Notes: generated by a model from the letters alone, not told the origin. A stretch of DNA of 64,000 nucleotides from Orbicella franksi (GCA_964199315.1 OZ116704.1:29016001-29080000); one strand, 5' to 3'. Positions 20,383-24,330 are shown, counted from the first letter of the stretch. Numbers and translations: made by a program.

Positions 20383-23318
20383 TGACTTAATCCTCTTTGC
20401 CTCTTGTGAGGCATAGGGTTTCCACCATATCTCTCCACCGGACCCTGTTCTTCGCAATCTTTTCGGCCCCACCCTATGTCTTCCGGATGTTCTCCCTGTT
20501 TCCTTTTGCGTTAAGGATTCCCATCATGTCCACTCTAGTGGTGGTCTCTCTCTCTCTCTCCTTCCTCAAGGTAGGGCCGACCATTTCCATTTCCTTCGTA
20601 TTATGGTGATTTCTACCTCTTCTTGTCCAGTTTTTGCCCATAGTTCCTCGCTTTTGATGACATCTGGCCAAAAGATACCGAGTATCTGGTGAAATATTTT
20701 TTTCACAAACGTCTGCACTTTGGAAAGCAGAGCTTTGGTTAGGCGCCAGGTTTCCGACCCGTATAGAAATACCGATTTGACATTAGAGTTGAATGTCACC
20801 AACCTTGTCTTGAGGGAGAGAGCTCATGCTTTCCAGAGTACCGCTCTGAGACATATAAAAGCTTGCTGCGCTTTCCTGATCCGTGCAGTGACATCCTCTT
20901 CTGTTCCTCCTTTCACGCTCACTATGCTGCCAAGGTAAGTGAAGTTGTCTGGGATATCTTGGATATCTTCATTCCCAGCGTGGAGATGGTTGCGATCTCT
21001 AGCCTGGATTCTCATTTCTCTGGATCTTTCCAGTGTTGATCTTAAGACCTACTTCTTTCACATGCAGTCTGGAGTGCCACCATCTTCTCCTGCGCGTACT
21101 GAAGCTTGTGGCTTAGGGGGCAAAGGCTGTCGGCGAAGTCCAGGTCTTCTAACTTTCATCTTAGAGTCAACTGTATGCCGGTTCTTTGCGTTCCATCATG
21201 ATATGCTTGTCTGGTGACCCAGTCTAGAACTACCAAGACAAGTAGTATGGGCGAAAGTAGGCACTCTTGTCTCACTCCGGTTCTTACTTGAAATGGTTCC
21301 GACAGGAATCCACAGTGGATCACCAGACACACAAAGCCGCCGTATAGGCATCGAATAATATTAATGATCTTTCCTGGTACTCTGTAATGCTGCAGGATTT
21401 GCCACATTGCCTCTCGGTCCACCGAATCAAAGGCCAGATAGAGTCCAGTGTTCCATTCCAATGACTGTTCAATAATAATTCTATGAGTGGCTATTTGATC
21501 TGTGCATGAACGCTCACGGCGAAAACCAGCTTGTTCGTCTCTCAACAATGAGTATAGTGCCAGCTTCATTCGATCCAGCTTAATCCGGCTTAGAGCTTTA
21601 CCTGCAAAAAACAACTCAGTGTCATCCCTCTCCAATTCTAATAATGTGTGATATCGCCTTTCTTCGGCAACTTCACAAGGAGGCCCTTCTTCCAGTCTGG
21701 GATTTCTTCTTTATCTCTCCAGATCATTATCGATCCCAGTCGCCTTTCCAATCTTGAGGCTTTTACTGGCTGATCTAATTTCGACCCTGGTTATGGTGTC
21801 TATCTTTATCGACAGCTCTCTAGGCTGTAGGACAGCTTGGTTTAAGGGTTGGGGGGGGGGGGGGATTAGGCACCACTTTAAAGTGTCCCTTCCGCTTGCA
21901 AGTTATTCATCAGCTTTGGCAAGGATGCCCCCTTCCTTATTGGGCATTTGGTTAGGTCTTCGTACGCTGTAAATTCTTGTTGTTTGATACAGTCTGTTAA
22001 GATCTCCCTTACTTGCAACCCTATTTATGACCAAAACAGCTAAAAACCTATACCCGATAGGGTCGCACGTATACTTACTGTATATAGCCCATATTAGAGA
22101 GTGCCCACCCCGGGGTCCCTATCAAGTACTGCTTTTAGTTGCCTTCTTTCTTCAATCTTCTTTCAAGGATCGCCCGTGATCATGAGCTGTACCCTTCTTT
22201 TCCTCTCACTTTTCCTGACACATCTTTACCTGTTTTGATGTACAGATGTACATAGCCTTGATAGAATTCCAGTCCTCTTTCACGTCTCTTTCGTCTTCTC
22301 CTAGGCAAGGATCGCCTTCTAAAGTTCTTAAGAGAACTTCTCCATCGTCGGTTTATTGTGATGTGATCAATCTGGTTCTCAGTTCTTGCATCGGGCGATC
22401 TCCATGTAGCTTTGTGACATGGTTTGTGGGGGAGGATAGTGACCGCAATTACCAACTCATTGATGACGCAGGAATCAGCAACTGAGGCTTTCACCGTTCT
22501 CATTCATGTTGTCTATCTAGTCCATGCTGCCCTATACATATTTTAAAACACTTAAATACGTACGTGTATTTCATATTTTATTAATCATTAGATAAGTAAT
22601 CGTAGTTAGGTCTTCCCAATTAGTATACATTGTATGCTAGCGACTTCGACACGTTAATAAAGTTCTTATCTTATCTCATCTTATCTTAACTTACGACAGT
22701 CTCCATCAGTCAGCATAGTAATTGCCAATTTTAACCTTTAAAATCTCCTACGACAAGGGTCATTTCTCTTCTTAGTGTTCGATCGTCTTCTGTTTGAAGC
22801 TGGTGGTAGGAAGCCTCTTTTTCCTCGCCAGTTGCATCGTTAGTTGAAGCATAGTCTTGTATAATTCACATCCTTTGGCATTTGGAGGCGAATCTGGCTG
22901 TGATGATTCGTTCCGAGACCGGCTGCCTTGCTAGCGGGCTATCTGCAGCCATCCTTGAAAAGATAATACCCACTCCCTTCATATGAGGATCACCTTCGTT
23001 GGGGTTTCCAGAGTACAGGATGGTCTCTGCAAATGCTTCCGCAATAATCGACAGGTGTTCCACCTCATCTCGCTTACTCCAAGAATAGTAACTGTATCTC
23101 TTCATCTCCTTCACTATCTGGGCACATCTTCCTTGCTCGTACATACTACAAGCATTCCATGAACCAATTCTGAAGCTGGGGACCCATGTCCCCGAAGATT
23201 TGCTAAGGCTTCATTCAGCACGTGGTGGCTGGCCTTTGTACCTTCACCAGACCCCCGCTTGGCGCCTTAACGTTGCCCAGGACCCACGACGAGGGCGTGA
23301 GGTAGCACGTTGGATCTC
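20383..23318 (-). mobile_element. Decayed RTE-clade non-LTR retrotransposon (APE endonuclease + RT), full span with frameshifts, deletions and secondary insertions (~21790-22140, ~22505-22860)
   Basis: EN N-terminus (IGSWNACSMYEQGRCAQIVKEMKRY, ETILYSG, GVGII, PVSERIITARF); RT (QAGFRRERSCTDQI, AFDSVDRE, GVRQECLLSP); C-terminal (SVFLYGSETWRLTK, RRKWKW); 3' end ...ccctatgcctcacaagaggcaaagaggattaagtca. Confidence 0.88.
23239..23318 (-). ncRNA. HDV-like self-cleaving ribozyme fold at the RTE 5' end, probably inactive (catalytic C to U)
   Basis: P1 GAGAUCC/GGGUCCU (G-U first pair, one mismatch); P3 ACG/CGU; L3 CCCUCGU; GGGCAAC after P1; J4/2 GGUGAA in place of GGCGAA; P2 UACCU/AGGUA. Confidence 0.65.
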
Positions 23319-24330
23319 TGCTTGTTAAAATTTTCTCTTTTTCCGCTGCGTATGTTTTTATTTGGGAAATTGCCTACCTCCTCCTCCACCAAAAAGAATT
23401 AATGCTTTACGACGCGATAAAACATTTGGGCAAGAATGCGCATTAATTACTAGACTCGTGGCGTTGTCCTTTTATAACCCTTTTGATTCTAGTTCACTAA
23501 GAAATATTTGGCAGTACGTGTGACTGAAGTAGTGAGTTTTACTTCCTTACATTGTAAATCGTTAGCCCGGGATCCCTTATAAAGTGGACCAAAACTCTTA
23601 ATAAAATTTCTTGAGCGTTTAAAGGTATCCAAGTCAATTATAATTGATCACCTTTTGAACAAAGAAGGATAAAACCGTTCAGAAAATTGGTCGAATTTCA
23701 ACAAATTCTGCAAAAAATACAACAGACATGAAGCTAATTGACCACAAAAACTGCATCTGAGTGATTTTCCGAATGGGATTCGACAAATGGGTTGACCTGG
23801 GAAATTCCCTCCTCGTTTTCTCCCTACTCAGTGGCATTTCCACAAGTTGCTCGGCAACTTTTCGGCAACTTTTCATGTTTCGAGGGCCTTTTTCCCTTTC
23901 TAGCAACTACTGAACATTCCATTCCCCCAAACGATTGGTGCCAAATTTTTGTTCTAAAAATTTGAAAATGCCTCATAAAGCTGATAATTACCATAGTAAC
24001 ATATATGACGTCATAATGAGTTTCACATTGACAAGGAAGAAAGAACTGGAATTTTCTCCTCGAGGGCGCTCTTTAAAATTTGCATCCTATGAGGATGCTA
24101 CAACAGTAAAAGGCGAACTTTTTAAGTGTTGTTTATCCCACAACTACAGTAAAACAAAATATACAGACGCTTTGTAGCTGAAAACTTTAATTGAATTGAC
24201 TACCGATGACTGAATAGATAATTTGCTCTGTACATTAAGTTTATCATATCTATGCTAGCGTACCCCGCCAAAGATGATATTCAGTTTAAAATAAAACTTA
24301 AATAACCCATATTTTGTACATACCATACAT

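Follow-up and report, generated by a model that had tools for sequence, protein, structure and literature searches.

A probable decayed ribozyme of the hepatitis delta virus type at the head of an RTE-type retrotransposon in the coral Orbicella franksi

The retrotransposon and its 5' boundary

The window analysed here is a stretch of 64,000 nt of Orbicella franksi (GCA_964199315.1 OZ116704.1:29016001-29080000), lying within a 497-Mb coral assembly. A decayed element of the class lacking long terminal repeats (non-LTR), with an endonuclease followed by a reverse transcriptase and interrupted by frameshifts and stops, occupies positions 20383 to 23318 on the minus strand. Its first 66 nt (23318-23253) are very probably a decayed copy of a genuine nested double-pseudoknot ribozyme, similar to that of hepatitis delta virus (HDV), which heads a coral family of RTE type. 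Homology, the element boundary, pairing potential, covariation and agreement with the Rfam HDV models were observed, and from them we infer self-cleavage and its role in the element.

The reverse transcriptase is marked by an RVT_1 match on the piece 21156-21635. The N-terminal piece of the element has about 105 paralogues in the genome, with open reading frames (ORFs) of up to 1098 aa, one of which shows a weak Exo_endo_phos_2 match in addition to RVT_1. Proteins with 55-73% identity were found by a word search with a 114-aa N-terminal piece and were then aligned (alignment A1). The putative RTE label comes from the architecture of the element and from the name used in a preliminary description of the same DNA. 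The 3' end of the element lies near 20383, the point where homology with two 5'-truncated copies ends. Endonuclease homology (RIGSWN...) begins at 23171, 147 nt from 23318, in good agreement with the distance of about 150 nt between ribozyme and endonuclease start given in that description. In the relatives, the ORF opens with an AUG 109 nt after P1, the first paired segment of the ribozyme; this AUG is at position 2001 in the relative L068, where the protein begins 'MITETKALAN', and corresponds to 23212-23214 in the window. In the window copy, deletions follow the family AUG and the frame is broken, with stops and frameshifts interrupting it further on; the element is dead. A 'LAN..APSG' peptide of the relatives overlapping the ribozyme was ruled out, since the ORF begins 109 nt after P1.

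Relatives were collected from several sources. A scan of metagenome contigs gave 43 coral-derived loci, and 5' ends homologous to the candidate 5' region were detected by blastn in L068/L069 (identity of 80% across window positions 23316-23210), L087, L067, L095, L076 and L103, while L080 turned out to be the same locus as the window copy. Searches of the coral's own genome with the DNA of the element's 5' region matched only the locus itself. With Rfam, 20 paralogue loci gave no HDV match. A covariance model built from the closest ribozyme family (R1) retrieved seven further strong copies from this genome and also matched two other RTE lineages in it, L049/L050 and L051, at their 5' ends; its weaker matches lie a few hundred bases upstream of endonuclease starts in other RTE lineages. 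The paralogue search with the N-terminal piece showed no endonuclease N-terminus near the strong R1 matches, which lie at G000 C14:3917010-3917123 and at six other places (C2:17146404, C14:3013221, C14:4272418, C12:1198595, C14:5803645 and C11:28175016); these seven may head derivatives that are non-autonomous or have internal deletions.

In the alignment, likeness among the relatives begins at G[G/A]GAUCC, that is, at the first base of P1, and the flanks upstream are unrelated, except that L068/L069 and L095/L076 pair up as single loci. L049 and L050, which also have unrelated flanks, are likewise alike from the first G of P1. Homology running 5' of 23318 was looked for in the relatives and none was found. 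The point at which independent insertions become alike coincides with the predicted cleavage site, immediately 5' of G23318, and by this comparison the element's 5' boundary is confirmed at 23318, where the preliminary description had placed it. Just above 23320, the G+C content falls to about 0.38 from about 0.6. The same insertion, bridging 23318, is present in contigs of four public runs, and one of these runs bears the label of a second species. In an alternative haplotype, the differing positions are 23193, 23203, 23215, 23237, 23240, 23254 and 23269; no variant at 23246, 23317, 23295 or 23257-23262 was seen in any of the four runs.

Architecture of the 66-nt fold

Counts of invariance and covariation are based on a MAFFT alignment (A4) of ten sequences from at least three RTE lineages, made up of the closest family and three sequences of two other lineages (L049/L050 and L051). 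The supported fold is compact, with P2 abutting P3 and P4 reduced to a mini-hairpin. All parts are on the minus strand, and the letters from 23318 are exactly those of the preliminary description. The 5' strand of P1, GAGAUCC (23312-23318), starts with the first base of the element and pairs with GGGUCCU (23279-23285). Six of the seven pairs form in the window copy, beginning with a G-U pair, as had been described; the mismatch is A23317 opposite C, where the relatives have G. The family G expected at this second position is present in eight of the ten sequences, and A occurs only in the window copy and in the decayed L076. P1 is fully paired (7/7) in L068, L067, L087, L049 and L050.

P1 is followed by J1/2, AACGUGCUA, of 9 nt (23303-23311), and by the 5' strand of P2, CCUC (23299-23302), which adjoins P3 and pairs with GGGG (23253-23256), the 3' end of the ribozyme; P2 is paired in 92.5% of cells. 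P3 is formed by ACG (23296-23298) and CGU (23286-23288). The loop between them, L3, reads CCCUCGU (23289-23295), and its bases C23294 and C23293 form P1.1 with GG (23277-23278), which is invariant in all ten sequences. Seven of the nine other sequences have UCCUCGU as L3, or differ from it by one base while retaining the initial U, whereas the first base in the window copy is C; in the decayed L095 and L076, L3 is interrupted by an insertion. The segment 23263-23276 holds J1.1/4, GCAA, and the mini-P4, CGU-UAAG-GCG, with three base pairs and a tetraloop. It is followed by J4/2 (23257-23262), in which C23261 aligns to a C that is invariant in 10/10 sequences and is the predicted equivalent of C75 in HDV. 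J4/2 reads C-CAAGC in the window copy and G-CUAAY in the relatives. A conserved hairpin, UGGUG-AA-GGU-ACAAAG-GCC-AGC-CACCA (23223-23249), lies 3' of the ribozyme and holds both U23246 and the GGUA at 23239-23242.

Judged by its sequence, L068 has an HDV-type ribozyme of canonical and compact form, 66 nt long. Its P1 strands are GGGAUCC and GGAUCCU, J1/2 is AAAAACCAA, P2 is CCCC with the same GGGG as in the window copy, and L3 is UCCUCGU. Both strands of P3 and the GG of P1.1 are identical in the two copies. P1.1 is followed in L068 by CCAA, the mini-P4 and a G, and J4/2 is CUAAU. In place of the mini-P4 of the window family, the other lineages have a P4 domain that measures about 116 nt. In the lineages of L049, L050 and L051, this domain separates the same 5' core from a 3' module GGCUAAC-GGGG-CUCUGGUGAA, and the L049-type fold has about 175 nt.

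In working copies, the ribozyme would act as follows. The element is promoter-less, and transcription would read through it from upstream. The RNA would adopt P1, P2, P3 and L3 as in L068, with a G-U first pair in P1, together with P1.1 (CC/GG), the mini-P4 and a J4/2 of CUAAY. The J4/2 C would serve as general acid, and the cut would fall immediately 5' of P1. This cut would set the 5' end of the translated and reverse-transcribed RNA at the first base of P1, with the conserved hairpin and then the ORF AUG coming after the ribozyme. As the reverse-transcribed RNA would start at the first base of P1, every independent insertion would begin there.

Support for the fold and competing explanations

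A strict descriptor (P1 7/7, no linker, L3 of 7 nt, P1.1 paired, CNRA) recognises L068 and has one chance site per 128 kb, as counted on both strands of the 64-kb window. The window copy, read on the supported map, belongs to a descriptor class with 20 sites per 128 kb, compared to 317 on the map of the preliminary description. In A4, the supported fold pairs 85% of cells, compared to 33-55% when the partners are slid, and its covariation scores 0.254, whereas shuffles average 0.187 and 0 of 500 of them reach 0.254. Both partners change in seven pairs, five of them in P1 and one in P2. For example, GGGAUCC/GGAUCCU in P1 is replaced by GGCUACC/GGUAGCU, and CCCC/GGGG in P2 by CUCC/GGAG in L051. 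Compensatory change thus affects five of the seven P1 pairs, and the first P1 pair is G-U in eight sequences and A-U in two. P3 is paired in 80% of cells, P1.1 can pair as CC/GG in all ten sequences without variation, and the invariant J4/2 C aligns to the GGCuAA of the Rfam models. Two HDV models, RF00094 (31.3 bits) and RF02682 (27.7 bits), align over their full length to L087 at 1889/1891-1955/1956. The ends of these alignments agree with the limits of the supported fold, and the GGCUAA of this relative lies on the GGCuAA of the models. The comparison of relatives thus bears out the proposal of an HDV-like ribozyme at the 5' end of the element.

Several results weigh against this reading. 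The covariation expected in the preliminary description is present across lineages, in P1 and in the supported version of P2, but the closest family alone shows no significant covariation. The support comes from the three added sequences of two other lineages and therefore reflects few independent events. P2 has only 4 bp and is nearly invariant apart from its one compensatory change, and P1.1 never varies, so covariation says nothing on P1.1. MAFFT placed the P1 5' strand of L067 one column off in A4, which makes the counts slightly inexact; read by eye, this P1 has 7/7 pairs. The scores of L087 are below the gathering thresholds of RF00094 (50) and RF02682 (44), and the Rfam search that the preliminary description had suggested gave no HDV match on the window copy, in 10 kb or in 201 nt, even at E<=10. 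The Rfam HDV models cannot score pseudoknots and give weight to the viral P4 sequence. A candidate target-site duplication, TTAA-CAAGC versus TTAAAGCAAGC, is not significant, 27% of shuffles being as good. A contig from an RNA library runs unbroken across 23318, which is weak evidence, since the library may hold DNA, and raw poly-A RNA reads give no coverage of the locus.

It is unlikely that the family carries a conserved, HDV-shaped structure of the 5' untranslated region (UTR) that serves protein binding or translation start and does not cleave, the 5' end being set otherwise. In its favour, cleavage is here a prediction from sequence comparison, and the most conserved stretch, GGCUAAC-GGGG-CUCUGGUGAA with the hairpin, reaches past the ribozyme core; the HDV-like ribozymes of R2 and L1Tc have been reported to aid translation initiation (PMC6765202). 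Two observations speak against such a structure. All features of the catalytic core are kept, including the G-U pair at the cut site, UCCUCGU in L3, P1.1 and the invariant J4/2 C. The first base of the element is also the first base of P1, which is expected from cleavage and not required by another function.

The window copy itself keeps the J4/2 C (23261), P1.1, P3 and P2. Four of its characters are unique or nearly so: A23317 opposite C, C at 23295, CAAGC in J4/2 and the C before the catalytic C. In the HDV ribozyme, the first base of L3 and the adenines of J4/2 are important to the metal site and to docking, and this first L3 base, a U, is the partner of G25 at the metal site. Given the importance of these bases in HDV, the window copy is most likely inactive or strongly impaired. 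Continued cleavage despite these changes is improbable, even with six of seven P1 pairs and the other elements just named intact: the A-C mismatch adjoins the cleavage site, L3 begins with C, J4/2 reads CAAGC instead of CUAAY, the copy lacks the Rfam match seen in L087, and the RNA-library contig crosses 23318 uncut, although this last point is weak.

The preliminary description had extended the ribozyme from 23318 to 23239, with UGAA as J4/2, UACC/GGUA as P2 and a catalytic C at 23246 that had been lost at a CpG, younger copies being expected to read GGCGAA. In this mapping P1, P3/L3, P1.1 and CUGGGCAAC have held, while the proposed J4/2 and P2 have not, and the mapping as a whole is very improbable. 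It can be drawn on the window copy, GGUGAA resembles the GGCGAA of HDV, and a C at 23246 would sit in a CpG. However, position 23246 is U in all ten sequences from at least three RTE lineages, UGAA is invariant, every relative reads CUGGUGAA, and no variant occurs in the four runs, including that under the second species label. This U is accordingly ancestral and conserved, part of the hairpin downstream of the ribozyme, and not a CpG casualty. The conserved J4/2 C is, by alignment, C23261, 15 nt upstream of 23246 and retained in the window copy. The proposed P2 pairs fully only in the window copy and is paired in 60% of cells, not above shuffles; instead of GGUA, the relatives have GGCA, AGCA or UGCA, with GGCA in the closest relatives and, through position 23240, in the alternative haplotype. 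Only a relaxed descriptor finds the mapping: it has to accept a catalytic U, one mismatched pair in P1, a P2 of no more than 4 bp and 2 nt linking P2 to P3. Such a descriptor has its 317 distinct sites per 128 kb, about 2.5 per kb, a frequency at which the complete mapping, considered by itself, is to be expected by chance. The Rfam HDV models also end the fold 13-14 nt before the 3' end of this mapping. As the window copy appears to be impaired by other changes, a U-to-C reversion at 23246 should not restore cleavage.

A chance resemblance, in which a G+C-rich 5' UTR without a ribozyme happens to fit a loose descriptor, is hardly credible: the density of relaxed matches, the missing Rfam match on the window copy and an unknotted minimum-free-energy fold no more stable than shuffles (z +0.9) would suit it, but independent insertions and lineages preserve the fold, and show compensatory changes in its P1 and P2, P1 starts at the homology boundary in every case, L068 agrees with the strict descriptor and two Rfam HDV models match L087 full-length.

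Known ribozymes, neighbouring features and significance

A decayed ribozyme at the head of this element, as preferred here, has close counterparts. According to the literature, RTE elements are cleaved at their 5' junction by HDV-like ribozymes (PMC3774820 citing Ruminski 2011; PMC6765202). For RTE, R2 and L1Tc, transcription is described as entering a promoter-less element from upstream, and the ribozyme as cutting at the element's own first base (PMC3774820; PMC6765202). As far as the accounts of RTE and other non-LTR ribozymes go (Ruminski et al. 2011, J Biol Chem 286:41286, as cited in PMC3774820 and PMC6765202; Webb et al. 2009), the coral fold resembles them in its extreme 5' position, in a promoter-less element with a predicted cut at its first base, and in a double pseudoknot with a variable P4 and a downstream ORF. 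It differs, as far as those citing papers show, in belonging to coral lineages and in the minimal 66-nt form of the window family, whose mini-P4 has 3 bp; in the same genome, the P4 domain of about 116 nt is present in sister lineages.

The likeness to the HDV ribozyme itself (RF00094) includes UCCUCG-U in L3 of the relatives, CUGGGCAAC after P1 and GGCUAAUGGGG at J4/2-P2, for which the model consensus is GGCuAAuGgGaC. Unlike the HDV ribozyme, the coral fold has P4 as a mini-hairpin, a P2 of 4 bp and a J1/2 of 4-10 nt, it reaches 31.3 bits against a gathering threshold of 50, and it resides in a retrotransposon instead of a circular RNA genome. The HDV-like ribozyme of Faecalibacterium prausnitzii (RF02682) shares with it the compact form, the short P4 and CGGCUAA at J4/2, and L087 matches its model full-length with 27.7 bits; this score is below the gathering threshold of 44, and the known example is bacterial and located upstream of glmM. 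The R2 ribozyme (Eickbush and Eickbush 2010; PMC3774820) is similarly an HDV-like fold in the 5' UTR that frees the element RNA from a co-transcript. R2 inserts at a specific site in 28S rDNA, and in many species its cut falls 9-36 nt upstream of the junction (PMC3774820), unlike the coral element, whose predicted cut is at the junction and whose insertion sites are dispersed. An HDV-like ribozyme heading RTE elements is thus an already known device, and the window copy is a relic of it.

Other folds were noted at the starts of RTE copies. In two further families, A (L052, L056, L058-L061) and B (L034, L036-L039, L042), the RTE starts with a different HDV-like-looking fold. This putative fold was drawn by hand from the alignments, and its P1 (CCACUCC/GGAGUGG in A, CUUCACC/GGUGAAG in B) and P2 (GGAGUC/GGCUCC in A, GGGCUG/CAGCCC in B) covary between the families. 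It has a linker of 2-3 nt between P2 and P3, CGAAGA(A) as J4/2, and a distance of about 105 nt from P1.1 to J4/2. Two identical type I hammerhead matches, 216 nt apart and each with a sub-threshold score of 27.7 bits (gathering threshold 34), lie at L051:523-566 and 739-782 (G000 C5), upstream of another RTE copy. This pair looks like a tandem retrozyme or a Penelope-type repeat.

Two repeats were recognised in and near the element. A high-copy repeat of about 160 bp is inserted in the endonuclease region at 22533-22693. Copies with 90-95% identity were scored in at least 40 places among 395 candidates genome-wide, and the repeat is probably a short interspersed nuclear element (SINE) or a miniature inverted-repeat transposable element (MITE). 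Outside the element, the stretch 23837-23884 has a word depth of hundreds to several thousand, compared to 3-37 alongside, in both DNA-type runs and in RNA-library contigs, and it is covered by raw RNA reads that are loose-ended on either side. The stretch is a short repeat, expressed and of very high copy number.

The 3' module CUCUGGUGAA with its hairpin (23223-23252 in the window; also in L049-L051) is more conserved across RTE lineages than the helices of the ribozyme. It is nearly invariant in lineages whose P1 and P4 have changed completely, and it ends 9 nt before the family AUG. One tentative interpretation is that the module 23252-23223 is a functional partner of the ribozyme and not a spacer. 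If so, it could position the ribosome on the uncapped RNA with a 5'-OH that cleavage would leave, or be a handle for the element's own protein.

Collectively, these results fix the 5' boundary of the element to the base, at 23318, and add a minimal, very HDV-like form of 66 nt to the ribozymes that head RTE elements. A plausible story built on a single copy, that of a catalytic C lost at a CpG, was overturned by the family, in which the invariant U belongs to the neighbouring hairpin. The presence of sister lineages with a large P4 in the same genome makes a natural minimisation of P4 traceable within one genome, and a covariance model of the fold marks the full-length 5' ends of RTE elements for the annotation of coral genomes.

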